Of a stretch of 41,951 nt of DNA, positions 1-26,089 are shown one piece after another. Source of the stretch: Paramoeba atlantica (Eukaryota > Protista > Discosea); assembly GCA_977017575.1 (NCBI GenBank), contig CDRNVI010000114.1, positions 1 through 41,951 on the forward strand. The letters run 5' to 3'. Each line of letters opens with the position of its first letter. Position 1 is the first letter of the stretch. The translations under genes were made by a program, and so were the position numbers. The notes under the pieces are model-generated. The model worked only from the letters and a program-made list of their open reading frames with translations. It had not been told where the DNA came from and did not search any database.

Positions 1-1
1 A

Positions 2-670
2 ATCATTGCGGGTACCAGTGCGGTAGGTACGCAACAAACCATTGAATTAACTGAGGCTGCTGCCAGATTGGGTGTAGATGGGTGTTTGATTATGACACCT
101 GCATACGTAAAACCAACTCAAGCAGGCTTATATCAACATTATGCTGCTATTGCTAATGCGGTTGCTATCCCACAAATTTTATATAATGTACCGGAGCGTT
201 GTGTCTGTGATTTATTGCCTGAAACCGTTGTCGAGTTAGCGAAATTGCCTAACATCGTCGCAATTAAAGAAGCCAGTGGTGATCCAAAACGTTCGCAACA
301 GATTATTGAATTGTGTCAAGAATCGTTGGCAGTACTAAGTGGCGAAGATGCCAATACACTAGCCATCATGCAATTTGGTGGTAAAGGTGTAATTTCAGTC
401 ACGGCTAATGTAGTGCCTGAATTATCGCAAGCTCTGTGTGAAGCCGCTCTCCAAGGTGATATGCAACAGGCAAATGCGATTAATCAACAACTAATGCCGC
501 TGCATCAGGTATTATTCATCGAGACAAATCCAATCCCGGTTAAATGGGCGTTATATAAAATGGGGATGATTGAGTCTAGTATCCGCCTGCCATTAACGGT
601 ATTATCTGAGCCGCATCAGGCAGAGGTGCAACAAGCATTACAGCAAGCGGGTGTTGAATTGAAGTATTAA
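2..670 (+). CDS. dapA: 4-hydroxy-tetrahydrodipicolinate synthase, 5' truncated by window edge
   Basis: Frame open from base 2 (IIAGTSAVGT...); motifs PAYVKPTQAGLYQHY, ILYNVP, VAIKEASG, LSGED, GVISVTANV, ETNPIPVKWAL. Confidence 0.97.
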   Translation: MIAGTSAVGTQQTIELTEAAARLGVDGCLIMTPAYVKPTQAGLYQHYAAIANAVAIPQILYNVPERCVCDLLPETVVELAKLPNIVAIKEASGDPKRSQQIIELCQESLAVLSGEDANTLAIMQFGGKGVISVTANVVPELSQALCEAALQGDMQQANAINQQLMPLHQVLFIETNPIPVKWALYKMGMIESSIRLPLTVLSEPHQAEVQQALQQAGVELKY

Positions 671-728
671 TCTTAAATAATAAGAACAATTAACATTGCT
701 TTTTGTTTTAAATAAAATTGGTAGGCAC

Positions 729-1768
729 ATGAAATACACAAATAAACATTATATGTATATTGCAATAGGGTTGTTATGCAGCATTGGTATAACCAGTTGC
801 GCACAATTGGATCCACATAAAACGTTGTGGGAAACAACCCAGCAAGTCACTAAAAAAGCCGGGATAGGTAACCGTGCTAATGAGTATCGAGACAGTAAGG
901 ATGAATCTGACTTGACTATGCCAACAGGCGTGCAGTTATCAGATAGTAAAGCATCGTATCCTGTTCCAAGTGTATCCAATCGCTCAACAACCTTATCTGA
1001 TTCTGATCTGCCACCAGGCAGTTTGGCAGCACGGGTTTATTTAACGAAGCAAGATCCAGGTACATTACAAGTTACTCCACTCAGTCAACTTAAAGTGACT
1101 CGTAATCGTGATGATACGGGATCATTACAGTTGAATACCGGGTTTCAATCAGCTTGGGATGTAACAGGTTTGGCCATTGTTACTAGCCCTTACCAGTTAG
1201 TGAACGCAAATCATGAGGTTGGTATTTATACTATTGCTGACCCAAGGCAAACAAATGCGAATAAACGAAAAAAAATACTGTATCAAATCACTGTTCGAGG
1301 TGGTACGGCACAACAATCACAATTGTTAATAGCTGGAGAAAAAGGGCAGCCATTGCCTGCTAATCAAACTGAGCAAGTGCTACAAACCTTACGTAAACAA
1401 TTATTGGCATTAAATAATAAACAAACTGCACAGTTAAAAACCGGTAGCGTTGGTCACAACCGACATTTTATGCTAATCCGGATATGTTGTTAAATCGATC
1501 CGTTCGTCAGGGACAATCTGCTATCATCACTGCATTGAAAAAAGCAGGGTTTACGACACTTAAATCAGCAGCAAAAAGCAGTGCTTATTTATTCGTTGAT
1601 ACACGTAACAATAAAAAGATTAGCAATGATATGCCAATTTATTTACTGTATTATCGCGATAGGGGACTGTATAGTACTTACTATGTATTAGATAGTAATA
1701 CTAAATTATTACCGGAAAACATAGCACAAGGGATGTTAACAGCTATTAGTAAAGCTATTAATCGCTAA
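729..1768 (+). CDS. bamC: BamC/NlpB-like outer-membrane lipoprotein, one apparent frameshift near 1440-1480
   Basis: Signal peptide with lipobox ITS-C; sits between dapA and purC, the known bamC position; two similar segments (LQLNTGFQSAWDVTGLAI.. and LLNRSVRQGQSAIITALKKAGF..) fit tandem BamC domains. Joins ORFs 696..1493 and 1484..1768. Confidence 0.7.
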
Positions 1769-1781
1769 GAGGAAATAATCA

Positions 1782-2513
1782 ATGCGGTTAGGTAATGAAC
1801 TAACTCGAGGCAAAACTAAGACGATCTATGAAACGGATGTGCCCGATCAACTCATCATTGAATTTCGTAATGATGTGACTGCATACCAAGCTAAAAAACA
1901 TCAGCAATTAGCACGCAAAGGCATGGTGAATAATTATTTTAATGCGTTCATTATGCAAAAACTACGTGATGCGGGCATTGCTAATCATTTTGAGCAATTA
2001 CTCAATGATACTCAATCCGTGGTCAAACGCTTGGACATGATTAAACTAGAATGTGTTGTGCGTAATATTGCTGCAGGCAGTGTGTGTAAGCGTTTAGGGA
2101 TTGAATCCGGCTATACGTTTAATACACCCTTATTTGAATTATTTTATAAAGAAGATTCATTAGATGATCCCTTAGTTAGCGAGGATCATGCACTTGCATT
2201 TAGTTGGGCAACACGTGAGGAATTGACACGTATGCGTGAATTAACCTTTGCCGTTAATAATGTATTAAAACCATTGTTTGCTGAAAAAGGTATTTTATTA
2301 GTAGATTACAAATTAGAGTTTGGGCGTTTTCAAGGTGATTTATTGTTGGGGGATGAGTTTACCCCAGATGGTTGTCGTATTTGGGATGTTGATACTCACC
2401 AAATTCTAGATAAAGATCGCTTCCGTCAAGATTTGGGGGATGTGATTGAAAGCTATGAAATAGCGGCAAAACGATTAGGCATCGTGTATCCAAATACATC
2501 GACAGCTGCTTAA
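1782..2513 (+). CDS. purC: Phosphoribosylaminoimidazole-succinocarboxamide (SAICAR) synthase
   Basis: GKTKTIY, FRNDVTA, LECVVRNIAAGS, LVDYKLEFG, GDEFTPDGCRIWD, LDKDRFRQDLG; intact 243 aa. Confidence 0.98.
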   Translation: MRLGNELTRGKTKTIYETDVPDQLIIEFRNDVTAYQAKKHQQLARKGMVNNYFNAFIMQKLRDAGIANHFEQLLNDTQSVVKRLDMIKLECVVRNIAAGSVCKRLGIESGYTFNTPLFELFYKEDSLDDPLVSEDHALAFSWATREELTRMRELTFAVNNVLKPLFAEKGILLVDYKLEFGRFQGDLLLGDEFTPDGCRIWDVDTHQILDKDRFRQDLGDVIESYEIAAKRLGIVYPNTSTAA

Positions 2514-2515
2514 AC

Positions 2516-2535
2516 CTAATCCGCAGTTGGATTAG
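2516..2535 (+). terminator. Hairpin just after the purC stop, possible terminator or processing stem
   Basis: CTAATCC-GCAGTT-GGATTAG, a perfect 7-bp inverted repeat; no clear U-tract. Confidence 0.25.
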
Positions 2536-2577
2536 CCTGCGAATTTTAGGTTAAATGTAGCGTTTGCAAAGAGAATA

Positions 2578-2670
2578 GGAGAGGTACCGAAGCGGTCATA
2601 ACGGCGTCGACTCGAAATCGAATGGGGGGGTTAACGCTCCCACGCGGGTTCGAATCCCGCCTCTCCGCCA
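2578..2670 (+). tRNA. tRNA-Ser, anticodon CGA
   Basis: Acceptor 5' GGAGAGG; anticodon loop CT-CGA-AA; long variable arm; T-arm GCGGG-TTCGAAT-CCCGC; discriminator G plus encoded CCA. The 3' acceptor strand is one C short, probably a sequencing deletion. Confidence 0.93.
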
Positions 2671-2722
2671 GGCTTCGCCTGTCCTTCGTGCTTGCGCACT
2701 ACGCCGAACTACGCCCGGCAAG
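2669..2722. repeat. GC-rich palindromic REP-like element abutting the tRNA 3' end
   Basis: Hairpins CAGGC-TTC-GCCTG (2669-2681) and GTGC-TTGC-GCAC (2688-2699), then a direct repeat CTACGCC-GAA-CTACGCC. Confidence 0.45.
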
Positions 2723-4713
2723 AAACGACCGAAAAGGAGGAAGAGTATCAAGGAAAGAGTGAAGAAGAATATGAAGAAGAGCATGATGTTTTCTATCAAC
2801 TTCCTCGACATACTCAGATCATTTCCCAATTACAATATAAATATTTATTAAATAAAGTTGAGCACTTCATAACTACTGAACCAGACAGTATACTTTACTT
2901 TATCGAAAAAGAACTGAAAAATGAATGTGAGAAGTATGTAGGTGAGTTTAATACTTTATTATCATCATTTAAAGGCAGCGAAGACAGCCACAAAATTTGC
3001 GCAGTAGACCTACATGGCCAAAATAACATTTCCTCATTATTGCGAAATGTTTTTTCTTATACTGGAGTTGTGTTGTCTATAGCTGCAATAGCTGCTTGTT
3101 TGTATAAAAGTAGTTCTATTGCTTTGTTTATAGCTGATATATTTAAATCTATAATTGATGATACTGAAGATAGATACTTATTATTTGTAGGCTTAGCAAC
3201 CATATTGTCCGCTATAGTTGTGCTAGCGTTGTTAATAGCGATATCTCATAAGTTTATACGTCAGATGTTTAATAAATTGGGTGGTACACTTTATATGGCA
3301 TCTGAATATAGTTACTACGATTCTATAAATCAGGATGATCAGTTTAAAGAAGCGATCTCATTAGATGAGATACCATCAGATGAGGAAGCCGGCAATCCAC
3401 CTAACACAGCACACATAAAAATTTTCCCTGCTGATTTGGCAAAAGTAATATCTTTTTCTAAGCATCCTATCGTTAAATTTTTTGCTATGTTATCTCAAGC
3501 AGACGATTTAACAAATGAGCCTGCATATATGAATATGATTCCATTACGATTAATACAACAAAGTAATCTTTTTCAGGAAGATCAACCATCTAAATTTAAG
3601 ACATACTTAGCACCACCTTGTGAATTTCTTGATAAAAGATAATCACTATGGCCAGTTTTTTGACTTTAAACGTACAATAACTACACTAGAAAACTCTGCG
3701 AAAAATTTACCTGACAGAATGAGCAACTTTGCAGATAGAATAAAAAAAATAATCCAAGAAAAAAATCTGTCAAATTTACCTAAAGTAAATTTTCAACGTC
3801 AAAATGGTACTGCTTTTAAATCTATCCTTGCAACAAGATTAGAATTGACACAGCAAGTTTAGATGAATTGGCATTGTTGCTTGCCTTTACTATGATTTAC
3901 GATAAATATAATCCAGGTGAAGAAAGAGATAGCTTATCTGTTGCTTCACAAGCTATCTACAATAGTTTATGGTTCAATAAAGAGGAATTGACTTTATTCG
4001 GCAATGCCTTCCTTGAACTTCAACAAGAAGAACGAGATGCTAAAAACACATTATATTGATGCATTTTCAAAATGGCTGCGTGAATCATTAGCATTACTAC
4101 GTCAATCAATTAATATTCTGCGAAGTGATATGCGTACTGGCTGTACTGTAGACTTTGTATCTTATTTTTATTATAAAAAGCAACCGGTTAGACCTTTGTT
4201 ACTACAAGCGCTTATTACTATTGCGCATGATCAGACTTTAAATTGTATCATTGAATTTTTTGATGATGATATGTAAGAAATTAGTCAATTCTTTAATCGA
4301 ATACGTAACGATAGTGGCATAAATGATATTAGCATAGATAATGAGTTGTTTTTTTGAAAAAATTGATCAAATAGAGCAGCTAACTAGTTTGGATAGTTTT
4401 AATAGAAAAATTAATTATGCTATTACAATACTTACACAGCTATTATTAGAAAAAGATTCTGATAAAAAAGAATCAAGAGGAAAATTAGAGGAAAAAAGAA
4501 GAAGCAGAAGATGTAGAAATTCCACTAGTAGAGGATGAATCATTATTAGAAGAACAAAGACTCAAAACATTATTTGCTCTGTGGTTTACAGAGAGCAGAG
4601 TAGAGCATGTATCAAGGCCTCCCGATTTGGTGATACCAACAGCTCCGTTTCTTGGCGCCAGCGTTAAAGGTGCTAAAGGCAATCCTGGCAGCAGTTGTAG
4701 TTTTAGTAATTAA
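2692..4713 (+). CDS. Hypothetical acidic protein of about 670 aa with central hydrophobic segments; about 5 indels plus one in-frame stop; start uncertain
   Basis: ORFs 2692..3642, 3620..3862, 3868..4059, 4004..4276 and 4341..4538 plus a final frame ending TAA at 4711-4713 abut or overlap and can be stitched into one protein. No family motif recognised. Confidence 0.5.
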
Positions 4714-4875
4714 ATATGCTCTAAAGCGAGAATAATAAATACATAGTCGCCCTCAAATTATATTTCAATCACGATGTGGGCAGATATAAAAGATGGACTC
4801 ATCTTAAGCTTATACCAGAGCTTCGTTGTGAAAGGTATGTTAGACTACCTTTGTTAAATTCTGATAGGAGGTAAT

Positions 4876-5561
4876 ATGGTGGCCGCAACGCAAACTACGC
4901 TATATGGCGTGCCTATTTCACCATTTGTGCGCAAAGTACGTGTGTTATTAGCGCATAAGCAAATTGACTATGAATTTGTATTAACCCGTCCACATGACAA
5001 GGCAGAGCCGTTTCAATCGCTTAGTCCTTGTGGTAAAATTCCAGTGTTTACTGACGATCAAGTTGTGCTACCCGATTCAGTTGCAAGCTGTGCTTATTTA
5101 GAAAGCACGCTATCCGAATAATCCAGTTTATCCAAACAATCCGGCTGATTATGCAAAAGCAATTTGGTTAGAACAGTTTGCTAATAATGAGCTAAGTCGT
5201 GTTATTAATCCCAAAATATTATGGGCACAGGTAGTCGGTCCATTGTTTTTTGGACAACCAAAAGATGATGCGGTGACTCATGATGCAATGGACTGTTGAC
5301 TTGCCTCCGTTATTTGCTTATTTGGAATCGCAGTTAACCAGTAGTTATTATTTTATTGGTAATATATTTTCAATTGCTGACATGGCTGTGGGTAGTATGT
5401 TATTAGGGATCTATCATGCTGGTTTTCATATTGATCCGGCAACCTGTCCAAGATTGGCAAATTTTATGGAACATTTTTTACAACATCCCATTGTCGCAAC
5501 ATTATGGCGTGAAGAATGTAATCTATTAGAAAAAGCTGCAACGCGTGGTGTCCCTGCATAA
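4876..5561 (+). CDS. Glutathione S-transferase family protein, two apparent frameshifts (near 5110 and 5290)
   Basis: SD GGAGG; LYGVPISPFVRKVRVLLAHKQIDYE, SPCGKIPV, LPDSVASCAYLE; C-terminal YFIGNIFSIADMAVGS..CPRLANF. Confidence 0.9.
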
Positions 5562-6227
5562 TGTTAAGTTTGACTAAACAGCACGTTGCTAGTTTTGATA
5601 TTGATCCTCAAAATGCGTTTACGCCACATTGTCCAGATGAATTGCCAGTCCAAGAAGGGGATCAAATTGTTGCAGAGTTAACTGCACAAGCAGCTTGGGC
5701 AGCTTGGCGTATTGGTTCTAAAGATGCACACAGTCCACAGGCAATTTGGGTAAGTGATGCAACGCATCCACCATTATCCCCTTTAAATGCACCACAAGCT
5801 GATGTGTATTGGCCAGCCCATGCAATACCTGGCACAATTGGTTTTGAATTAATTGATAGTTTACCCAAGCCGGAAGAGTACGATTATTTTATTTTGGAAA
5901 GGGGTTGAGTTGGATTTGCACCCTTATGGTGCGTGTTATCATGATTTGCAAGAAACATTGTCAACCGGTGTCATTGAATTTTTGCATGCCCATGCGATTA
6001 AAGCAGTAATAGTTGGTGGATTAGCAACGGATCACTGCGTGAAAAATACGGTGTTACAGCTACGCCGTGTTAATATAGACGTGTTGGTTAATTTGGCTGC
6101 TTGTCGAGGTATTGATTCACATACGGTTGTTCAAGCAGTTACAGTAATGCAACAAGCTGGTGCGATATTACTAAATAGTGCAAGTGATTTAGCTCAATAT
6201 ATTAGTGTTAATGAGACAGTAACGTGA
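5561..6227 (+). CDS. pncA: Nicotinamidase (isochorismatase family), frameshift near 5890
   Basis: FDIDPQNAF, SKDAH, WPAHAIPGT, FWKG, VGGLATDHCVKNT with the catalytic Cys; TAATG overlap with GST and GTGA overlap with pncB. Confidence 0.9.
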
Positions 6228-7386
6228 TTATTCAATCATTGCTTGATACAGATTTATATAAATTTACCATGATGCAAGCTGTGCTGCATCAGTTTCCCGG
6301 GGCTATTGTTGAATATGCATTTAAATGTCGTACTCCTAATATTGCGTTAAATAAACTGGCTGACAAAATCAGTCAAGAAATTGATCAGTTATGTCAATTA
6401 CAGTTTGCTCAAGACGAATTAGCCTATTTAAATGAGTTTAGCTTCTTTAAAAGTGACTTTATCGATTTTTTGCGTATTTTTAGATTAAACCGAGAATTTA
6501 TTAAAATTACGACTAAAGATGAATTTTCACTCTCAATTAAAGGCCCTTGGTTACATACTATTTTATTTGAAGTGCCTATATTAGCGATTATCAGCGAAGT
6601 ATATTTCAGAGAACTTTATCCTGATTTAAACCTTTGAAGAAGGTCGTAATCGATTACAAGAAAAGATTAAATTAGTTAAACAAGATCCATCTTACGGTAA
6701 CTTTCGATTTTCTGATTTTGGTACCCGTAGACGATTTTCACATGCTTGGCAACGTGAAGTAGATGAAACGTTATCAAAAGCATTGCCCACGCAATTTTCT
6801 GGTACTAGCAATGTGTTTTTCGCTAAAGAATTTGGTATTCGTCCAATGGGAACGATGGCACATGAATACTTACAAGCTTGCCAAGCGCTAGGACCACGCT
6901 TAAGTGATAGCCAACGTTTTGCTTTTGAACATTGGGCACAGGAGTATCGCGGGGAGCTAGGGATCGCCTTATCAGATGTATGTGGAATGAACGCTTTTTT
7001 AAATGATTTTGATTTATTTTTCTGTAAATTGTTTGATGGTGCACGTAATGATTCTGGTGATCCATTTATATGGGGAGATAAACTGTTGACACATTATCAA
7101 AAAAATGCGGGTTAATGCGAAAACAAAAACCATGTTGTTTAGCAATAATTTGACATTTCCCAAAGCGTTACAGCTGTTTGATTATTTTAAAAATAAAACT
7201 AATCCCGTATTTGGTATTGGAACCAATTTAACAAATGACATCGGTCCTGATCCTATTCAGATTGTGATTAAGATGATTGAATGTAATGGTCAACCAGTAG
7301 CAAAAGTGAGTGATGATCCTGGAAAAACCATGTGTCGAGATTTATCTTATCTTGCCTACCTTAAACAAGTCTTTCATATAGAATAA
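6224..7386 (+). CDS. pncB: Nicotinate phosphoribosyltransferase, frameshifts near 6635 and 7105
   Basis: [86 protein letters not shown]. Confidence 0.96.
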
Positions 7387-7403
7387 CTCAGGCACTATTA
7401 AGG

Positions 7404-7423
7404 AAAACCGCCATCTTTGGTGG
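7404..7423 (-). terminator. Intrinsic terminator between convergent genes
   Basis: + strand AAAA-CCGCCA-TCTT-TGGTGG gives a stem plus U-run on the - strand; lies in the 67-nt gap between pncB and the amidotransferase. Confidence 0.45.
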
Positions 7424-7453
7424 ATCTTGCCAGAAAATGTAAACAAAAAGTGC

Positions 7454-8316
7454 TCATGTATGCCAAATACACTGCGCTTTTAGGATAATGGTTCTAAGTA
7501 GGTTTTCTAAATTCTTCTCTACTACTAGTAGATGATTCATAGGAACTTCTATCCATGCGTCAGCACAATCGTTTAAGCGTTCAGAGGCTATTAAGATCGC
7601 GTTGTTGTCATTATTTTGTAATTTATTATTTGCTAGATTTAGCTTGGTAAAATATAAGGTTAATGGAGCAAGGCTATTATAACTGTGATAGCGACTGGCA
7701 AATAGACGTTCACCATCGGTTAATACTGTACTGATTCTTGCTTTAGTACTGCCACCGAAACGCCGTTGGCGTTTCGTAATTTGGCTGATCATTTTATGGT
7801 ATGCTTTGATAATTTGCTTAGTTGTTGCATTGGCCATAGATTGGTTTAAGTAATGCATTAGCAACATAAACAAATGTTCTGAATCTGTTTGTCCATGAAT
7901 AGCATTAAACACATCTTGTTTTAGTAATTTATGCAAGCTGTATTTCAACTTATCAAAATCTTCAATTGTTCCATTATGAACAAATGCATATTGTTGATAG
8001 ATATAAGGATGCGTATTCTCTAAATTAACATTACCGATGGTGGAAGAGCGTACGTGTCCTAAAAACAGGTTGAACGTACTTTGTTTGCAATATGTGTTAG
8101 ATTTTTGTCATTCCAAGCAGGTAAAATTGATTTATATAAAGCAGGTGTTGCATCAATAGAGTGATTATACCAAGCGATACCAACACCATCACCATTTAGT
8201 GTCATGTCAGTTTCTCTAGCAGCACGGCTTTGATCAATCAGCGAATTTTCAGGTTTTTGCAAAATTTCACTAAGGATAATCGGGTCTTTACCTAAGTAAG
8301 CAACATAACGACACAT
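7454..8316 (-). CDS. Class II glutamine amidotransferase (YafJ/EgtC-like), frameshifted
   Basis: N-terminal MCRY with Cys2 nucleophile, NGDGVGIAWY, PAWND, HPYIYQQYAFVHNG (7960-8015 on - strand), GQTDSEHLF, DGERLFASRY, IASERL. Confidence 0.88.
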
Positions 8317-8367
8317 ACCATAACTCTTAATTATTTTTTATATGCCGTTAATTATAGTCTTTATGCG

Positions 8368-9437
8368 CTAACTAGATGATTTTGCGGAAGTTTTTGCTAA
8401 TGTGGCGACAAAATCATTTATAAACGCTTCGGCAGATACTGACAGTGCAACATCTACTGTATGCCCAGTCTGATCATGTCGTTGTATCTTTCCCCATGTC
8501 TGAGACACTTTAGTTTCAACAGATAATGACATAGGGCGCGTGACTACATAGTTTGGGTGAGCTAATATCCCAGCAGCTAACGGATCCCAAAAGTAATACA
8601 TAATATCATTATTAGAAAAATAATTTCTTTCTAATAAACGGGTTAAAAATGTTGTAATGGGGTTATTGGGGTATTTATCAAATTTAGTCAAAATATTAGT
8701 ATTCAGTGGCACTTGGTTAGTAACATCTAATGGAATTAATGTAATTGGGACCCCTGATTGTAATATGATTTGTGCTGCAAGTGGATCAAGATAAAAATTG
8801 ACTTCGGCCGTATTATTATTTGTTTTTGGCATAATTTCATCGACATTGCCAGGTACATTAATTGCACCACCTAACATAACAATACGTTGAATATTCTGCT
8901 TTAAGCGCGGATTTTGATGCAAGACATTAGCTAATGTTGTTAATGGACCAATAGTCAGGATAGAAACCGGTTTTTCTGAATTTTTTAGCAGTTTTTTATA
9001 AGCAAATCTTGCAGGCATAATATCAAGATTATTTACTGGATATTCTGGCAAGTTCATATTTAATAATTCACTTGGGCTTTTGCGAAATTCATCAGGTAAT
9101 CGCTTATTACCAATTAAATTATAGGTTCTACCTTCACCAATAATAAGGGGTTTATTGTATTTTGCCAAAGCGAGTATTCGTTTAAATTTTCTTTTGCGAC
9201 TGGCAAAAATGATACGCCGTTACCATCTAAGATAATGCCACGCACATCAATATTAGGTTGCTTTAATAAATATAAAATAGCCATCCAGCCATCTGATCCC
9301 ATATCAGTATCAATAATGACATTTTTTTTGGTCGGTATGTTATTAAAGAATTTTGTACTGAGGATCCCAGTAAAACCTGCTATCAACAATATGGCTACAA
9401 TACTTGGAAAAATAATCTTACGCATAGCATCGCTCAT
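8368..9437 (-). CDS. Nucleoside hydrolase (IU-NH family) with N-terminal signal/anchor, frameshift near 9170
   Basis: VIIDTDMGSD, ILTIGPLTTLA, IVMLGGAINVPGNV, AEVNFYLDPLAAQII, LIPLDVTNQ, YYFWDPLAA; hydrophobic N-terminus MRKIIFPSIVAILLIAGFTGIL. Confidence 0.9.
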
Positions 9438-9564
9438 CCTATAAGCCTTAAGTAGGTAAAAATCATATCATGCTTATATAGCTAAATAAACTGCACAGAC
9501 ATTTACTATGGATATCGATTTGTAGTAATATTCCTGTTCATTATCATGGCTGAGTAACCCATAT

Positions 9565-10054
9565 ATGGCGGATTCATACCATATTATTGTCGACTTATCA
9601 TTACAGGTATTACGCGTCTTTAATCAGCAAAGGGTATTGTTTTCTTACTTAATTTCGTCGGCTATCAATGGTGCTGGTGAACAAATGAATAGTGAAAAAA
9701 CACCACGTGGTTACCATCAGATCTGCGCCAAAATTGGGGCAGGGGCACCAATTAATACGGTATTTCATGCCAGAAGACCAACAGGAGAAATTTGTACACC
9801 TTATTTACAACAATGTTACCCGCATCGTGATTGGATCGTAACACGTATATTATGGCTTGCTGGCTGTGAGCCAGGTAACAATCGTTTTGGTGCGGTTGAT
9901 ACAGCAAAACGTAAAATTTACATTCATGGTACTCCTGATCCTAATGTGCTTGGTGAACCTAGTTCCCACGGCTGTTTTGCGCATGGCAAACCAGGATATT
10001 ATTGAGTTATTTGATATGATCCCAGCAGGCACACAAGTCTGTATTCAAACATAA
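9565..10054 (+). CDS. L,D-transpeptidase (YkuD family), frameshift near 9980
   Basis: IIVDLSLQVL, SSAINGAGE, KTPRGYHQI, RILWLAGCEPG, IYIHGT..SHGC then RMANQDIIELFD in the next frame. Confidence 0.92.
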
Positions 10055-10099
10055 TAAAAGGGTATCTTACATGAAAATTAATTGCGAAGGATAAACAAT

Positions 10100-11224
10100 A
10101 TGCTAAATGTACTTGAACAATTTACTAAAAAATCGCATCAGGCCATGGTTGGTTAGTTCAAATATTCATATTTATCGTCCTGATTTTTAATAGTTGATTT
10201 AACCATCAAAATTATTTTAGGTCGTTTACTGAAACGCGCTAAAAAAACCAATAATGTTTGGGCAGAAAGCTTTATTTGGGCGTTGATTGCCCCGTTACGT
10301 TTACTCATTTGGGTGGTTGGTATTCTATATGCACTAGAAATATTGCACTATCGAATCCCCAACTTAATCATTTTTAATATGTTGCCAATCATGCGTAGTA
10401 TTGGCACAGTTATGATTGTCGCGTGGGGGCTTACCGTTTTACAACAGCCGCAGAAACATTCTTAGCGAGAAAGTATGCCGATAAAAAAACAGGTTTGGAC
10501 AGAACACTAATTCATGCCATTGGCAAACTGACACATGTTGCTATTTTAATTACAGCCGCATTAGTGTTATTACAAACATTGGGCTTGAGCATTTCAGGGA
10601 TCTTAGCCTTTGGTGGGATTGGTGGTTTGGCAGTCAGTTTTGCTGCCAAAGATATGTTATCTAACTTTTTTGGTGGCTTGATGCTGTATTTAGATAGGCC
10701 ATTTAAAATTGGGGAGTGGATCCGTTCACCGGATAAAAATATCGAAGGAGTTGTTGAGCACATTGGTTGGCGTCTAACCCAGATCCGCACGTTTGATAAA
10801 CGGGTTTTATTTGTGCCTAATTCAGTATTTTCAACTATTTCAGTTGAAAATCCATCACGTATGACTAACCGACGCATTCGCACGGTAATTGGTTTACGTT
10901 ATGACGATGCAGCTAAATTGGCAGACATCATTCAAGCTGTTGAAGATATGCTATTGGCTCATCCTGATATTGATACTAAGATGACGTTGTTTGTACGATT
11001 TGTTGAATATGGTTCGTCATCGCTAAATTTTTTAATTTATACCTTCACTAAAACAACTGATTGGGTAACCTTTCAAAGTGTGCAACAAGATGTACTATTG
11101 AAAGTAATGGAATATTATTAATCAATTTGACGCACAAGTTGCATTTCCAACAACAACACTGCATATTGCAGATGACATTCAACTAGGCACATTACAGAGA
11201 GAATCACAGCATGACCATTCCTGA
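10100..11224 (+). CDS. mscS: Small-conductance mechanosensitive channel (MscS family), about 3 frameshifts
   Basis: LAFGGIGGLAVSFAAKDMLSNFFGG, RPFKIGEWI, GVVEHIGWRLTQIRTFD, VPNSVFS, NPSRMTNRRI; after a shift near 11112 continues NQFDAQVAFPTTTLHI..HDHS* (TGA 11222-11224). Confidence 0.93.
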
Positions 11225-11263
11225 AAAGATTATTGATGTTGCTAATAAAGCAACTTGCTTGTA
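11211..11263 (+). pseudogene. hpt: First 17 codons of a probable hypoxanthine-guanine phosphoribosyltransferase, cut at the junction
   Basis: ATG overlapping the mscS end encodes MTIPEKIIDVANKATCL, resembling the Legionella-type HGPRT N-terminus (MTIPxKI..KxTCLY) as I recall it; then the sequence turns AT-rich. Confidence 0.6.
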
Positions 11264-11266
11264 GAT
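11259..11266. other. Bacterial-chromosome / mitochondrial-DNA breakpoint
   Basis: Abrupt drop in GC and change of genetic code; the bacterial frame ends and a TGA-containing mitochondrial frame begins at ...TGCTTGTA|GATTTAAA. Confidence 0.85.
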
Positions 11267-11782
11267 TTAAATTACCTTCAGTTACTTGATTATATAAAAA
11301 AAGGTTTAATATAAAATTAAAAAGCAAGTATATATATGCAGCAAAATTATCTTTTTTTAAAAAAAGATATTTATTTATTAATATACTAAAAAATTTTTTA
11401 AAGGGTTCAAATTAGATTGGTTATCTTTGAATTTTGTACTATTAATTTAATATTAAAATTTAGAAAAAATACTTATTTAAATTTTTCGCATATTAATGGT
11501 AATGTAATAAAAAATTTTTCATGTGGTTTTTATTATAAAAAATCATTAAAAAAAAACATATTTTGCTTTAAATTCATTAATTGTAGCTTCAAAAATTGAT
11601 TTTAAATATTTATATATGAAAAAATGATTCATATTAAATATAATTTATAAATATTATACTCGTAAAATTTTGAGAAATTTAAAAGAATTATTTGAGACTA
11701 CACCTTATAATTTAAAATTTATTAATTTTATAAAATCAAAAGCTCATAATGGTATAAGAAAGAAAAGAGAAGAAGAAAATAA
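11265..11782 (+). CDS. rps11: Mitochondrial ribosomal protein S11, 5' truncated at the junction, several indels
   Basis: KNTYLNFSHINGNVIKNFSCG aligns with S11 NNTxxTxTDxxGNxxxxxSxG; C-terminal KAHNGIRKKR matches PHNGCRxxKxRR. Confidence 0.7.
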
Positions 11783-11785
11783 TAA

Positions 11786-12112
11786 ATGAAAAAGAAAAAA
11801 ATTATAAATTATTTAGATAATTCTTTTTTAAGTTTATTATCTATAGAATATAAAAAAAATTAAATAATAATATATCTATTGAATTAAAGTATTTTTATTG
11901 ATTATATAAGAATGTATATATACGTAATATTAAAGGATTAATTATAAATTTTAATAAAAAAACAATATTTAAATATGGAAAGTTTTTTATTATATTATAG
12001 GTATAAAAATATACGATTAAATCAATTATATTTTGTTACTTCACCTTTTAATCTATTTTTAAAATATAAAATTAGTAATATTAAAAATATAAATTATATA
12101 TATTATAAATAA
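11786..12112 (+). CDS. rpl19: Probable mitochondrial ribosomal protein L19, indels
   Basis: YIRNIKGLIINFNKKT..NIRLNQLYFVTSPF resembles L19 RxQxFEGxxI..GVERxFPxxSP; about 108 codons. Confidence 0.5.
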
Positions 12113-12120
12113 AAAAAAAT

Positions 12121-12711
12121 ATGTTATTAAAAAAAAATAGTAATAATTATGCTGTAAATTATATATTAAATTTACTAATTAAATATATTTCGCATATAAA
12201 AATAACAGATGAATTTATTAAAATTAAATTAGTATCAAAAGATTATTTAGGTTTTGTTTTAAATATTTTTAATAAGCATACTTTTTTAAGATATAAGGTA
12301 ATAACTGATATTTGCTGTAGTGATTTTATTGATAGAGCTAAACGTTTTGAAATTGATTATAATTTATTAAGTATAGATTATAATTCTAGATTAATTATTT
12401 CTGTATCTTGTGATAAATTAGATGTTATAAGATCTATTACTGATATTTATTTAGGTGCCGATTGGTTAGAACGTGAAGTTTGAGATATGTATGGTATTTT
12501 TTTCATGGGTCATAAAGATTTAAGACGTATATTAACCGATTATGGTTTTGAAGGTTATCCGTTTCGTAAAGATTTTCCTTTAAATGGTTATTTAGAAATA
12601 AGGTATGATGAAGATAAACAATATTTGATTTATGAGCCTATTGAATTAATGCAAAATATGAGATCATATAGTTTTACTAATCCTTTATTAAATAAAAAAT
12701 ATATACTTTAA
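12121..12711 (+). CDS. nad9: NADH dehydrogenase subunit 9
   Basis: [18 protein letters not shown][TGA=W][29 protein letters not shown]. Confidence 0.97.
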
Positions 12712-12715
12712 AAAC

Positions 12716-13900
12716 GTGAATAAAATATTTAAAAAAATAAAAACTTTTACAATTAATTTTGGACCACAGCATCCAGCAGCTCATGGAGTTTTAAGATTAA
12801 TATTAGAATTAAATGGTGAAATTATAGAAAGAGCTGATCCTCATATAGGATTATTACATAGAGGTACTGAAAAATTTAATAGAATATAAGACTTTTATAC
12901 AAGCTTTACCTTATTTTGATAGATTAGATTATGTATCTATGATGGCTCAAGAACATTGTTATTCATTAGCTGTAGAAACTTTAAGTTCTACTAATGTACC
13001 TATAAGAGCAAAGATGATACGTATGATTTTTGGTGAAATAACTAGAATATTAAATCATATTTTAGGGTTAACTACACATGCGTTAGATGTTGGAGCGATG
13101 ACACCTTTTTTATGACTTTTTGAAGAACGTGAAAAATTAATGGAATTTTACGAAAGGGTATCAGGTGCTAGAATGCATGCAGCATATATAAGACCAGGAG
13201 GTATTAGTCAAGATATACCTATGTCTTTTTGTGATGATTTATATAAATTTACACAAAATTTTATTAACTCTTTAATGGAAATGGAAGAATTATTAAATAG
13301 AAATAGAATATGAAAGCAACGTTTAGTTGATGTAGGTATATTAGATTATAATCAAGCACAAACTTGAGGTTGTAGTGGAGTTATTTTAAGAGGATCTGGT
13401 ATTCCTTGAGATATTAGAAAAAGTGAACCTTATGAATTATATAATGAAGTTGATTTTAAATCTTATATAGGAAATAAAGGTGATTGTTTTGATAGATTTT
13501 TAATTAGATTAAAAGAAATGCATGAGAGTTTAAAAATAATTTTACAACTTTTAAATAATTTAAAAGAAGGTCCTATTTCAAATTACAATAATAAATTAAC
13601 TATACCTTCAAGATCATTAATGAAGTTTTCTATGGAATCTTTAATACATCATTTTAAATTATTTACAGAAGGTGTTAATATACCTTTTAATGATGTTTAT
13701 AGATCTATAGAAGCTCCTAAAGGGGAATTTGGTGTTTTTTTAGTTTCGGGAGGATTAAATAGACCGGTAAGATGTAAGATAAAAGCACCAGGGTTTAATC
13801 ATTTACAATTATTAGATACATTATCAAAAGGACATATGATAGCCGACGTTGTTACTATTATAGGTACTTTAGATATAGTTTTTGGGAGGTTGATCGTTAA
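12716..13900 (+). CDS. nad7: NADH dehydrogenase subunit 7, GTG start, indels near 12875 and 13885
   Basis: [56 protein letters not shown](E)VDR*. Confidence 0.97.
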
Positions 13901-13933
13901 TCAAATATTAATATAATATTAAATATTATATAT

Positions 13934-14388
13934 ATGCAAAAAAAATTAAATCGATTTTTTAATTTAAGAATTAATTCTAGAGGTGCCGCTTTTGAAAATT
14001 TAAATATAGGACCTAATTTAAGTCCTTATATGAATAGAGAGAAAATCAAAGAATTTTGTAATGAATTTAATAAACAAACTTTTATATATAGATCGGAAGA
14101 TTTATTAATATATGTTAGATTATTTTTATATACTGATAAATCATTTGTTTTTTAATAAAAGGACCTTCTTTTAGTACTTTATTAAAATTGGTTTGAAATA
14201 TTATGAGTTTAACTAATAAAAATATTATGGAAAATTCAATTACATTAAGAAGTCTATATGATATTGTTATATTGCGTAATTATTATTGATTTAAATTATA
14301 TAATAATTTAAATCAAAATTGAATAAAATTGCGATTTAAAAATAGTTTTTTTTCTATATCAAATTTACAAATTAATAAAATTATATAA
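13934..14388 (+). CDS. rpl11: Mitochondrial ribosomal protein L11, indel near 14150
   Basis: IGPNLSPY..IKEFCNEFNKQT..DKSFVF(x)IKGPS matches L11 GPxLG..xxFCxxFNxxT..DxSFxFxxKxP. Confidence 0.85.
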
Positions 14389-14394
14389 AAAAAT

Positions 14395-14775
14395 ATGAAT
14401 AATAATATTATAGCTTTTTTTTATGTAAATCAATATAAATCGTTTAATAATTTTGAACAAATTTATTTAAACATAATGAATTTATCTAATATTAATTTAT
14501 TATATAAAATTTTTGTTAATATTAAATATTTTCTAATTATTAATAAGAAATATTTTAAAGATTATTTTACTAATCTTTTAAATAATGATGAATTATTATT
14601 TTTATGATATAAAAATAAATTATATAGTAAAGGAACTTTAGAACAAATAAATAATAGTTTGTTATTAAATTTAAATAAAAAGTATTATTTATTTAATGAA
14701 TTAATGAAATTCAATTATGAAAAAAAAATTATTAATACGTTAATAATATTTAAATATAAATTATGGCTTCGTTAA
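14395..14775 (+). CDS. Unidentified 126-aa ORF, possibly ribosomal protein L10
   Basis: Open under code 4 (TGA at 14605); sits between rpl11 and rps12; [19 protein letters not shown] only weakly resembles the L10 C-terminus. Confidence 0.4.
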
Positions 14776-15173
14776 ATCAATTAATAAGAAATAAAGGCAG
14801 AGTAAAAAAAAAAAGACGTACAAAAGTTCTTTTGTTAGATTCTTGTCCACAAAAAAGAGGTGTTTGTATTGAAATTAGAAATAGTGTTAGTCCAAAGAAA
14901 CCAAATTCCGCTAAAAGAAAAGTAGCAAAAATAAGGTTATCAACAGGTAAAAAATTAATAGCAGTTATACCAGGTCAAGGTCATAATTTACAAAAATATT
15001 CAGTTGTTATGATTAGAGGAGGACGTGCTAGAGATATTCCAGGTGTACGTTATAAATTGATAAAAGGAAAATATGATTTTAGTAATTGAGAACGTGAAGA
15101 ACGAAATAAAAGTCGTTCTAAATATGGTTTGAAAAAAAAAAAGAAGGAAGGAAAGATTTTAAAAGATGAATAA
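14763..15173 (+). CDS. rps12: Mitochondrial ribosomal protein S12
   Basis: [52 protein letters not shown] after reading through TGA at 15087. Confidence 0.97.
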
Positions 15174-15585
15174 TTGAATAAAATATTTAATACAATTATT
15201 AATAAGAAAAGGAAAAAAACAACGAATTATATTAAGTTTAGAGAAAATTTTTATTAATATAAAAAAAATATATGGTTGTTTAAATACTTTTTTTAAACAA
15301 ATAGAAACTAATATATTCATTAGAATGTTTTGTTATATTAAAAAAGTAGGAGGTAAAAAATTATTAATACCACATATTTTAAAATCAAAAGATTCTATAC
15401 CATATTCTGTTAAATTAATAGTTAGATCTATTAATTCTAGAACTGAGCGAAAATTTCAAGAACGTATTCAAAATGAATTAATAGATGTATATAATAATAA
15501 AGGTTTATCTATAAAAAAAAAAAATGATATGTATAGATTAATAGAAGCAAATTATACTAATATTAGATTTAAAAGAAAAAAATAA
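15166..15585 (+). CDS. rps7: Mitochondrial ribosomal protein S7, indel near 15255
   Basis: LLIRKGKK, KKVGGKKLLIP, RIQNELIDVYNNKGLSIKKKNDMYRLIEAN; follows rps12. Confidence 0.9.
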
Positions 15586-15588
15586 TAT

Positions 15589-16332
15589 ATGTTAAAAAGG
15601 AAAAAACAGTCAAAAACAATAAAATATTTAACATTTGGTTTAAAAAATTATGCAGGAGTTAATAATATGGGTCATAAAACAGTTAAATCAAAGGGAACTA
15701 GAGTTAAAAAGAAATATAGATTAATTGATTTTTTTAGAACTTACGTTGATATACCTGCAATGGTATTAAGAATTGAGTATGATCCTAATAGATCTGCAAA
15801 TATAGCTTTAATATGTTATAAAAATGGATTTTTATCTTATATTTTAGCAGCCGAAGGTTTGAAAGAAGGTATGGTTTTAAATTCAGTAGATAAAATTGTT
15901 GGTTCTACATATCCTTTAGTAAATATAAAATTTGGTTCTTTTATATCTTGTATGGAATTAAAAAAAAAAAAAGGAAGTAAAGTAGCTAGATCTGCAGGTT
16001 CTTTTTGTTTATTAATATCACAAATAAATGAAAATTATTATTTAATAAGATTTCCTTCTGGTTTAGAAAAATTAATTTTTAAATATAATAAAGCTATGAT
16101 AGGTATTGTATCAAATAGAGGGCATAATTTAATAAAAAAAGGTAAAGCGGGTGTTAATATAAGATTAGGTAAAAAATCAACAGTTAGAGGTGTAGCAAAA
16201 AATTGTGTAGATCACCCTAATGGTGGTGGTAGAGGTAAAACTTCTCCATGAGTCGATTGTCCAAATTTTACAAGACGTGTATTAAAATTTGTACCTACAA
16301 CTAAGAAAAAAAAAAAAAATGAATTTAAATAA
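15589..16332 (+). CDS. rpl2: Mitochondrial ribosomal protein L2, indel near 16250
   Basis: GVNNMGHKTV, RIEYDPNRSANIALI, ARSAGS, GKAG, VRGVAKNCVDHPNGGG. Confidence 0.96.
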
Positions 16333-20845: not shown

Positions 20846-23800
20846 ATGAAAACTACATGATATAATAATATAATAAAACATAATATAAAAAATAATAAAA
20901 TAGTTTTATTTGATAATAAAACAGATTATAATGAGTTATCTTTATATAATTTAAATTATAAGAGTAAAAATTTTTTATTATTAAATAATGTTATTGATGT
21001 TATTAGTGATAATATTTATTCAGAAATAAAAAATTTCAATCTTAATTTAATAATAAATATTTATTATTTAATGAATAAATTTTTTAAATTTAATATTAAT
21101 AAAAAATTTTATAAATTAGAGTATTTAAATAATAAATATTTATTATTGAATTTAAATAATTCTAAATCGTTTTTTGTTATAAAAGATAATTATAAAAATT
21201 TTTATAATAATTTTTTTCAAAATTCTTTTATGAATTTTTTAGATTGTAATAAAAAATTTATATATAATAGAAAGTTAAGGTATAAAAATTATAATTTTTT
21301 ATTATCATATAAAAATAAATTAAGAAAAAAATTGTTTTTAAAGCAAACTCGTTTTAATAATATAGATAATGAAGATTTTTTAAATTTTGGACCAGAAAAT
21401 GGTTTATATTTTCAAACTATAAGTAATAGTTTTAGAAAGAAAAGAGAAGAAAAGAGAAGAAGAAAACAACAATTATTTCATTATAATAATAATATAATAA
21501 AAAAAACTATTTTTTTAAAAAAAGGTCAAGTATTTTTAGGTTATAATTTTAAGTCTTTATCAAAATTAAATTTATTTAATTTAGATTATATAAAATTTAA
21601 TAATAATTTTTATATAAGAAAAAAATATTGTCTTGAAAAGAATAAAAAAAATTTATTTTTATTATTTAGAAAAGAAAATTTATTAAAATATTATAATAAA
21701 AAATATTTAAAATATAAAAAATTTAATATAAAAAATTTTTATAATAATTATTATTTTTTATTTAAAAAATTATTGTATAAAAAAAATAAAAATAAATTAT
21801 ATAGAAAGAGAAAAATTTTAATTAAAAAAAAATTTAAAAATAAATTATATAATTATAATTTATTTTTAAATAAACTAAATTTATTTAAAAATAAAAAAGA
21901 AAAGAGAAATTTATTTAATATTAGATATAATTTTTTTTATAAAATATATAATATTAATTTATGAAAAAAATAAAAGAAAAGAGAAATTTTTAGATTATAT
22001 AAAAAGAATAAAAAATAACTTTTATTCTTTAAAATTATATAAAAGAAAAGAAAAAAGAATAAAATTATATAATTATTCATATTTAATTAAAAGAAAAAAA
22101 TTATTAAATTATAATTTTTTATATTTTATAAAAAATTTATATATTAATAGTATTTATAATAATATTAAAAATAAATTTTTATATAAAAATTATAAAAAAT
22201 TTTATATAATGAATAAATTTTTATATACTATTAATTCGAATATTGATTATAAAATATTAAAAATATTTTTAATAATATTAAATAATATTAAATTATTAAA
22301 TAATTATAAAATTTCTAAAAATGTTAAAAATTTCTTTTTTAAGAATAGTTTTAATAACATATTAAAAAAAAGAAATTGAAAACAAATAAATAAATATTTA
22401 TATTTTCGTATTTTTAATAAATATAATTATAATAAAATTAATAATTATAAATATAAAAAGAAAAAAATTAAAAAATTTATAAATATAAAAAGAAAAAATT
22501 CAAAATTTTTTATTATTAAAAAATCAACAACAAAAGAAAAAAAAATATATAAATTTGATAAATTTTTTTATAATATTTCTTTAAATTTAATTAAATTAAA
22601 TAAATTACATAAAAAAAAGGGAATAAAGAAAAAAAATTATTTTAATAATAATAAAAATATGAAATCTTTAATAAATTATTATATTTACAATTATAATAAT
22701 AAAGATTTATTGAATTTTAATATTTATAATTATAATTGTAAATATAATAAATTTAATAAAGATTATTGTTCTCATAAATATAAAAATTTTAAAGTTTATA
22801 AATATAAAAATTTTATATTTAATAGTTATGAATTAGATTATTACGATATAATAAATAAATTTCATAAAAAAAAATGAAATTTTTATATTATAAATGAAAA
22901 AGAAAAGAATGATTTATATTATAAATGAAAATCTATAAAGATACCTTATAATAATTTTTTAGTATTTTCTTGTAATATTAATTGTGAAAATTATTTAATA
23001 AAAGTTTTAACTAAGATTAAAAAGAATTATATTTTTTATTCAAAAAATTTATTAAATAATAATTCAATTATATCTAAAAGAAAAGAGAATAAAAGTTTAA
23101 AAAAGAGAAATTTTATATCTTATAATTGTAATTTAATTGATAATTTAAAATTAAATAAAAGAAAAGAGAAAAATTTAAAATCTTGAACTTATTATTTATT
23201 TATAAATAATAATTTAATAAAAGAAAAGAGAAAAATAATTTTAAAACCAATAAAAGAAAAAAAAAATATTAAAAACTCAATTTGTTTATGAAAAAAAAGA
23301 AATTGATTTATAAATAAATCTTTTACTCAGAAGAGTTCATATTTAAAATTTTATAATAGAAAGAAGAAAGTATTTATATTAATTCAAAAAAATAATTTAA
23401 AGAAAAGAGAAAAAAAATTATTAAATTTATATTTAACAGGAAAAAAGAGAAGATTCTATAGGTATAATAATATTACATCTTTTTTTTTAAATTATAAGTT
23501 TATTAATAATAATAAAACATTATTATTTAAACAAATGAAAAAAAAATTAAAAATTTTATTTAAAAAAGGTTTATTTAAAAAAAGTAGTATGTATTTTTTT
23601 AGAAGAACATTATTAGTAGAATATCCTAAATGATCATTAATAAAAGAAAATTATTTTAAACGTAATGAAGATAATATAATGTCGTATTTATCAAAATATA
23701 TACATTTTAAAATTTATAATATATATAGAAAAATATATAATATTGATTTATTATTTTTAAAACGAATTAATCAATATAAAAATTTTAGTAAACTAAATTA

Positions 23801-24531
23801 TTCAAAAATTTTAATTAATATTAGAAGTAATTTGTTACAATATTTTTATAACAAAAATAAGACTTTCAAAAGTTTTATTAAAAATAAAGTTTACTATAAT
23901 AAATTTTTAGTAAAAAATGTATCAATAAAAAATTATATATTATTTAATAATATTAATGATTATACTAATAATTATAAAAATATAAATAATTTGAAATATA
24001 ATAATTCTATATATAGTTATTATAAATATTTTTTAAAATTAGTATTATTTAATAATTTGATTTTAAAAAATAATTATACTAAAAAAATAAATTGTGATAT
24101 TAGTTTATTTATTACTAAATTTATGAAAAATTTAAATATAATATATAAGTATATATATAGTATTAAGTATTCAAATAAAAAAAATTTAAATTATTATTCA
24201 AAATTAAATGAAATAAATTTTTTTAATAATATTTATGACTATGATTATAGTTTATTAAATAATAATAGCTTAATAAATTATAAATTAAATACTGTTACTT
24301 TATTAAATTCTAAAAAATATTAATTAAATAATATTTAATTAATAAATTTAAAAAGAAATTTTTAAATTTGAATATTATTATTAATTTGAATAATAATAAT
24401 ATTTTTAAAATAAGGTAAAAAGAAAAAAATATTTTTATCTTATATATGTTTGCACCTTCAAGATGTTGTATAGAAAAAGAAAGAAAAGAATAAACGTGAA
24501 AAAATGATTAAGAAAATTATTTAGTAATTAA
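20846..24531 (+). CDS. Very large unidentified K/N/Y/I/F-rich reading frame, about 1150-1230 codons, many indels
   Basis: ATG 3 nt after the rps13 stop; long open stretches on + (e.g. 21071-21964, 22140-22877, 23580-24323) linked by single-base shifts; in-frame TGA used as sense. The 3' end is uncertain (24323 or 24531) and it could be more than one gene. Confidence 0.55.
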
Positions 24532-24561: not shown

Positions 24562-24942
24562 ATGCCACAATTAGATTTAGGAATTTTATTTTTAGAATTA
24601 GTTTTAAATTTTATATTTTTTTGATTAATTTATATTTATTATGCAAGATATATATTCCCTTTAATAAATAAAACTATTAAATTAAGAAAATATAAATTAA
24701 AATCTATAATAAAAAGATTATTATTATTAGAATCAAATATTTTATTTATTATAAAATTAAATTTAAGTATTTTATTAAATAATAATTTTTTATTAAATAA
24801 ATTTGTTGTTTTATTAAAATCTAAAATTAATAATATTAAAATTATTATTTTTAGTAAATTATATATATTAGGTTTAAATTTCTTAAAAAAAGAATCTTTA
24901 TTAAATAAAAAATATTTTATAATAAAAACAATATATAAATAA
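24562..24942 (+). CDS. atp8: ATP synthase subunit 8
   Basis: MPQLD N-terminus, one TM helix, FPLINKTIKLRK; TAATG overlap with cob. Confidence 0.93.
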
Positions 24943-26089
24943 TGAGATTAGTTAAAAAAGATATTTTTGTAAATGCATTTTATAATGCTTTAGTAGTTTA
25001 TCCAGCTCCTGCTAATATAACTTATGCTTGAAATTTAGGAGTTAGTGCTGGTTTGTTTTTAATTATTCAGATTTTAACAGGTGTTATTTTAGCTATGTAT
25101 TATACACCTAATGCTGATTTAGCTTTTGCTAGTGTTAGACATATAGTTAATGATGTACATTTTGGTGATATGCTAAGAATGTACCATGCTAGTGGATCAT
25201 CAGTTTTTTTTTTTGTAATATATTTACATGTATTTAGAGGTTTATATTATGGTTCATATACTTATCCTAGACAATTTGTATGAGTATCTGGTGTTATAAT
25301 ATTATTAATTATGATTATAACAGCTTTTGTAGGTTATGTTTTACCTTGGGGTCAAATGAGTTTTTGAGCAGCAACTGTTATTACTAATTTAGTGTCAGTT
25401 ATACCTTTTGTAGGTAATGATATATTATTATGATTATGAGGTGGATTTTCTGTTGATGAAGCTACATTACATCGTTTTTTTAGTTTACATTATTTATTAC
25501 CTTTTGTTATAGCAGCTTTAGCTGGAGTTCATATTATATTATTACATGAAGTTGGTTCTAATAATATATTAGGTATTAATCATAAGGTAGATCAAATACC
25601 ATTTCATCCTTATTTTGTTTTTAAAGATTTATTTAGTTCATTATTATTATTATTTGGTTTTAATATGTATGCTATAAAACATACTCCAAGTATAATAGAC
25701 GCAGATAATTATTTAGAAGCAAATCCTTTAGTAACACCCGTACATATCGTACCAGAATGATATTTTAAAGCTTTTTATGAATTTTAAGATCTGTACCAGA
25801 TAAAGCAGGTGGTTTTATCTTATTAGTTTTATCTATTATTGTTTTAATAATATTTCCATTTTATGTGAAAGCACCTATAGTTAGTGGTTATTTTAGACCT
25901 ATTTATAATTTAGGTTTTTGATTATTTATTATGGATTTTATTACATTAACCTGAATAGGAGGTAAACCTATAGAAGAACCTTATTATTTTATAGGTCAAA
26001 TGGCTACAAGTTTTTATTTTATATATTTTATTATATTGTTACCTGTTATTGTTAAATTAGAAAAATCATTATATAAAAATATTACTTAA
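24942..26089 (+). CDS. cob: Apocytochrome b, one missing base near 25780
   Basis: [12 protein letters not shown], heme-ligand His residues ([31 protein letters not shown]), GQMSFW, PEWYF, (A)ILRSVPDK. Confidence 0.98.

Follow-up and report, generated by a model that had tools for sequence, protein, structure and literature searches.

The window, the whole 41,951-nt stretch of DNA analysed here, joins 11.3 kb of a gammaproteobacterial chromosome directly to 30.7 kb of a mitochondrial genome within two genes, and the join is very probably a chimeric molecule that formed during library preparation or amplification and was read once or very few times. The break points are exact, both partners occur intact elsewhere, no repeat or mobile-element signature accompanies the join, and a tract of read-grade accuracy runs across it. 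Near ~11.2 kb the G+C content fell from 0.34-0.41 on the left to 0.07-0.26 on the right, and to the right of this point frames were open only with TGA read as tryptophan (1-12 in-frame TGA codons in most genes). The initial annotation had described a bacterial chromosome joined to a mitochondrial genome, in mid-gene on both sides, with a change of composition and genetic code at the junction; alignments to both parents confirmed that this join is present in the sequence, and the fall in G+C and the TGA = Trp frames agree with the change. Coordinates of the features are collected in Table 1.

Table 1. Features of the 41,951-nt window, with their positions, strand and the observations attached to each.
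Feature	Position	Strand	Observation
Bacterial segment	1..11263	+	Same strain as closed chromosome OZ220716.1 (ENA ERZ24900291 ctg4025c)
mscS	10100..11224	+	374 aa, intact in the chromosome; Pfam MS_channel domains on the intact copy
hpt, truncated after codon 17	11211..11264	+	ATG at 11211; TAG at 11262-11264 made by the join
Join	11262..11263	.	Only 'TA' common to both parents (three-way alignment)
Mitochondrial segment	11262..41951	+	Colinear with circular 39,429-bp ctg3923c, positions 16813-39429 then 1-8084; genetic code 4
orf193, 3' part	11262..11782	+	First ~20 codons missing; intact 193 codons at L001:2920-3501 and L045:15597-16178
Indel-rich tract spanning the join	1..14150	.	34 private indels in 1-14148 (2.4/kb)
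Private indels, bacterial	1-11263		24 events; 2.1/kb
Private indels, mitochondrial near the join	11409-14148		10 events; 3.5/kb
Private indels, remainder	14149-41951 (27.8 kb)		4 events; 0.14/kb

The bacterial parent

The closed chromosome was found by an exact-protein look-up of purC, for which it was the sole match. It is recorded as 'MAG: Gammaproteobacteria bacterium', chromosome 1, has a length of 2,447,832 bp and carries a circular flag in its contig name. Aligned with this chromosome (L003:8222-19474), window positions 1-11263 displayed 99.79% identity, with 0 mismatches and 24 single-base indels. The genes follow the order dapA (3' part), a bamC-like orf345, purC, tRNA-Ser(CGA), orf527, orf121, a GST gene, a pncA-like gene, pncB, a GATase gene, a nucleoside hydrolase gene, a YkuD gene, mscS and the start of hpt. 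Most of these bacterial genes are broken into two or three ORFs in the window, and all genes so broken are whole in the closed chromosome; mscS is frameshifted by indels found only in the window, at positions 10127, 10184, 10425 and 11111.

In the closed chromosome, mscS is followed by an intact hpt gene (L003:19422-19982) and then by an MFS gene. The intact Hpt has 186 aa and scored 250 bits on NF006605 (hypoxanthine-guanine phosphoribosyltransferase; cut-off 181). The gene after mscS had been annotated as a probable hpt stopping at 11262-11264, and the NF006605 match of the intact form bears out this identification, with the stop codon itself being a product of the join.

The two genomes could in principle have been brought together by a mobile element or by site-specific recombination, with capture of mitochondrial DNA. 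The gene lists of the intact chromosome contain no integrase, transposase, phage or plasmid gene within 10 kb either side of hpt, the tRNA gene nearest to the join is 8.6 kb distant, and the join is without repeats or duplication. All three findings speak against such an event, for which no supporting point was found, and we consider it scarcely credible. The initial annotation had seen no integrase, IS, att site or target duplication, and this holds over 10 kb per side on the intact bacterial chromosome.

Three further observations were made on the bacterial side. The tRNA-Ser(CGA) gene (window 2578-2670) scored 36.9 bits on Rfam and has private indels at 2660 and 2683, in or just past the gene; its low score is probably a matter of sequencing error and not of biology. 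The two genes that come after it, orf527 and orf121 (window 2692-4713; L003:10911-12929), match no Pfam family and have a lower G+C content (0.32), and they may be lineage-specific genes of an amoeba-associated bacterium. Chromosome OZ220716.1 has a G+C content of roughly 37%, and the best relatives of its MscS among species representatives (Vibrio, Psychromonas, Methylotenera and a Pseudomonadales MAG) are 47-54% identical. The gammaproteobacterium looks like a deep, undescribed lineage.

The mitochondrial parent

Mitochondrial contigs were found by exact look-up of rpl14, nad4L, atp1 and atp9. Purely mitochondrial contigs of the same species were present in four ENA analyses and one Logan run, and ctg3923c, circular according to the flag in its name, came from the same ENA analysis as the closed bacterial chromosome. 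Window positions 11262-41951 displayed 0 substitutions in 30.7 kb when compared to ctg3923c, all differences being small indels. The absence of substitutions on both sides of the join (11.3 kb and 30.7 kb) identifies the joined copies with the free genomes.

The mitochondrial genes run in the order orf193, orf107, nad9, nad7, rpl11, a block of ribosomal protein genes (rps12-rps7-rpl2-rps19-rps3-rpl16-rpl14-rpl5-rps14-rps8-rpl6-rps13), orf1159, cob, nad3, atp6, nad4L, nad5, nad11, nad1, nad4, nad2, rps4, atp1, cox2, cox3 and cox1 (5' part). The right part of the window represents the gene-rich mitochondrial genome of a protist. As an alternative source, an insect-symbiont genome of extreme A+T richness using genetic code 4 was considered and was ruled out by the nad, cob, cox and atp genes, including nad11 and atp1, and by the 39.4-kb circle.

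The gene cut by the join on this side is orf193, which in the window is also frameshifted by private indels. In the true mitochondrial genome, the region upstream of the break holds the LSU rRNA, trnN, trnS, the SSU rRNA, a further trnS and trnF, followed by orf193. The arrangement trnF-orf193-orf107-nad9 is intact in the circular ctg3923c, and two linear contigs of the same species that cover the mitochondrial break (L001 and L002) are intact there as well. The initial annotation had placed at the join a mitochondrial frame lacking a start codon and had named the cut gene rps11. In the alignments, orf193 loses its first ~20 codons; the rps11 label found no support, as a Pfam search of the two orf193 pieces, which cover the protein beyond its first ~60 codons, gave no significant match.

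Two other genes of the mitochondrial part are split in the window. The long orf1159 that follows rps13 is intact in public sequence with 1159 codons (L001:12568-16047) and has no Pfam family recorded; in the window (20846-24320) a private 2-nt deletion at 21970 breaks it into pieces of 376 and 814 codons. Similarly, cob (window 24942-26086) forms one gene of 382 codons in the circular contig (L037:7195-8343), and in the window a private 1-nt deletion at 25780 leaves fragments of 282 and 106 codons. Rfam and ARAGORN, the latter in bacterial mode, which odd or edited tRNAs may escape, detected no tRNA gene in the 30.7-kb mitochondrial part; over the whole window the two programs returned the bacterial tRNA-Ser only. 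Four mitochondrial tRNA genes (trnN, two trnS and trnF) cluster near the rRNA genes (L001:715-2803), in a part of the circle that is absent from the window.

Structure of the join

In a three-way alignment of the window with both parents, bacterial identity extended up to 11263 and mitochondrial identity began at 11262. It had been proposed that five bases (TTGTA) were compatible with both frames; the alignment reduces these to the two that the parents share. No adapter, N, repeat or duplication was found at 11262-11263 in the window or in the three-way alignment. The break positions are arbitrary, lying in the middle of a run of codons in both hpt and orf193. By our estimate, roughly one in four random joins between A+T-rich sequences would show an ambiguity of at least 2 nt by chance, so that its presence here is uninformative on mechanism. 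The same two bases do bear on the work of the assembler: since the parents share only 2 nt, a false overlap made by the assembler is excluded and the join lies inside a physical read. No second junction was found within the window, which ends inside cox1 and is still mitochondrial DNA at that point.

Private indels along the window

All differences between the window and the reference sequences were small indels, mostly in homopolymers. An indel was counted as private when it was seen in the window only, which on the mitochondrial side was confirmed by at least two contigs and on the bacterial side rests on comparison with the single closed chromosome. These indels were distributed very unevenly (Table 1). 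Maximum likelihood placed a change in the indel rate at position 14,150, with a 17-fold drop beyond it, and the binomial probability that at most four of the 38 events would fall in the final 66% of the window is 1.3e-12. The indel-rich tract consequently ends not at the join itself and instead 2.9 kb inside the mitochondrial part. Homopolymer density beyond the tract is as high or higher, and over its final 8 kb the window matches the mitochondrial circle without any difference. Accuracy is at raw-read level over the tract of ~14.15 kb and at consensus level over the remainder of the contig. A combination of 0 substitutions with homopolymer indels at ~Q26 is what would be expected of a single HiFi-type read, and we infer that the tract is one.

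This distribution also bears on an assembler misjoin, in which two genuine and separate reads were connected at a false overlap or in a graph tangle. Such an event could explain why the contig is partly of low accuracy and partly mitochondrial sequence of consensus grade, and the project did assemble mitochondrial DNA redundantly, into several linear contigs measuring 12-37 kb. The two shared bases, however, provide no usable overlap, and the N gap of a scaffold join is lacking. Furthermore, the high indel rate persists for 2.9 kb beyond the join, with no difference in indel rate between the left and right sides within the tract (p 0.20). Because the error regime is continuous over the join, both sides come from the same low-support source, and a misjoin of two reads is unlikely.

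Occurrence of the join in other data

Sampled 31-mers of window positions 6300-16200 were present at a share of 0.84-0.93 in four runs of one study and at 0.46 in one run from another organism and study. The computed share expected from the two unfused genomes was 0.942, and from one half alone 0.47. As the best runs (0.93) remained below 0.942, no listed run carries the private words of the window and the halves occur apart, the 28 junction words being too few for the sampled index to resolve. The join was absent from all fetched public contigs that cover either break site. Exact-protein look-ups returned no match on record for the 69-aa ORF that runs across the join and no record of a window-specific frameshifted ORF. 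An exact search of JGI metagenomes with the 30-nt junction gave 0 matches, a result of little weight given that the samples are in ENA.

These data, together with the structure of the join, were set against the reading of a genuine fusion, in which at least 30 kb of mitochondrial DNA from the host entered hpt by illegitimate end joining in a minority of the gammaproteobacterial cells and one such molecule was sequenced. End joining could leave a seamless join with 2-nt microhomology, the bacterium and the mitochondrial genome occurred together in the four runs of one study, and hpt is a salvage gene that is probably dispensable, all of which would suit this reading. A rare genuine molecule sequenced once would also give the same error profile. 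Against it, the closed chromosome of the same strain carries an undamaged hpt, the join appears in no other fetched assembly, support for it exists only at read-grade depth, and the window is without a second junction. The insert is also without divergence from the free organelle genome, although a very recent event would match this too. We know of no described case in which tens of kb of organellar DNA were naturally inserted into a bacterial chromosome. If true, the fusion would be an organelle-to-bacterium DNA transfer caught in the act, and we consider it very unlikely. The initial annotation had raised the prospect of 30 kb or more of organellar DNA inside a bacterial chromosome; the amount is right, with ~30.7 kb present (78% of the 39.4-kb circle), and its natural residence in the chromosome is very unlikely, the arrangement being judged an artefact.

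Proposed origin of the join

The initial annotation had favored a chimeric long read or a misassembly, and this is supported by the closed and intact parents, by the 0 substitutions on the mitochondrial side and by the error tract that runs across the join. The former fits better than the latter because the 2 nt shared between the parents rule out a false overlap made by the assembler. In the sequence of events that we propose, the DNA preparation would have been a mixture including the amoeba, its mitochondria and associated bacteria. A bacterial fragment ending in hpt could then have been joined end to end with an abundant mitochondrial fragment starting in orf193, either by ligation or by template switching of a polymerase, so that the molecule probably arose in vitro. 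The resulting long read would have comprised ~11.3 kb of the bacterium and at least 2.9 kb of the mitochondrion, and its mitochondrial tail may have overlapped genuine mitochondrial reads, allowing the assembler to extend it into a contig of 42 kb.

DNA prepared from Paramoeba is known to be mixed and to yield many bacterial scaffolds (PMC5601477). Chimeric alignments account for ~0.8% of reads in bulk HiFi libraries and for 60-70% in MDA libraries, and standard assemblers turn chimeric reads into structural errors or misassemblies (bioRxiv 10.64898/2026.06.11.730069).

Read as a chimeric molecule, the join has no biological significance and matters as quality control: the contig could pass for a case of horizontal transfer or could put organellar genes into a bacterial bin. 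Since cleaner public versions of both halves exist (OZ220716.1 and the 39.4-kb mitochondrial circle), the contig should be cut at 11262/11263 or removed. Where reads are lacking, the local density of private indels is a useful proxy for read support.

Comparison with known systems

The window resembles inter-molecular chimeric long reads, which arise by ligation in bulk HiFi/ONT libraries and by amplification in MDA or low-input libraries: unrelated and abundant DNAs meet at arbitrary positions and share 0-2 nt, no adapter is present, support is low and the parents are intact. The chimeras classically formed in MDA mostly consist of inverted rearrangements of a single molecule; unlike these, the window joins two genomes, which fits ligation better. 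It shares with NUMTs formed by end joining a seamless junction with minimal microhomology and a large, colinear mitochondrial block. In contrast to NUMTs, the recipient is bacterial and is intact in a closed assembly, no second junction was found, the insert is undiverged, and support from multiple reads or samples is lacking.

Among mitochondrial genomes, the right part has its closest named relative in that of Paramoeba pemaquidensis, which is likewise gene-rich (PMC5601477) and whose Atp1, with 80% identity, was the only named close relative returned for the Atp1 of the window. P. pemaquidensis is an amoeba with a Perkinsela-type endosymbiont and has a mitochondrial genome of 48,522 bp (PMC5601477), whereas the circle found here has 39,429 bp and its proteins are clearly diverged. 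Judging from these sequence comparisons, the mitochondrial part is that of another species or genus of the P. pemaquidensis group. A fifth ENA analysis supplied a contig (L039; ENA ERZ25074695 ctg243506_2x_l) from the mitochondrial genome of a related amoeba, in which, over 11 kb, the order of genes is conserved and nucleotide identity is 83-89%. This contig evidently comes from a sister species sampled in the same kind of project.
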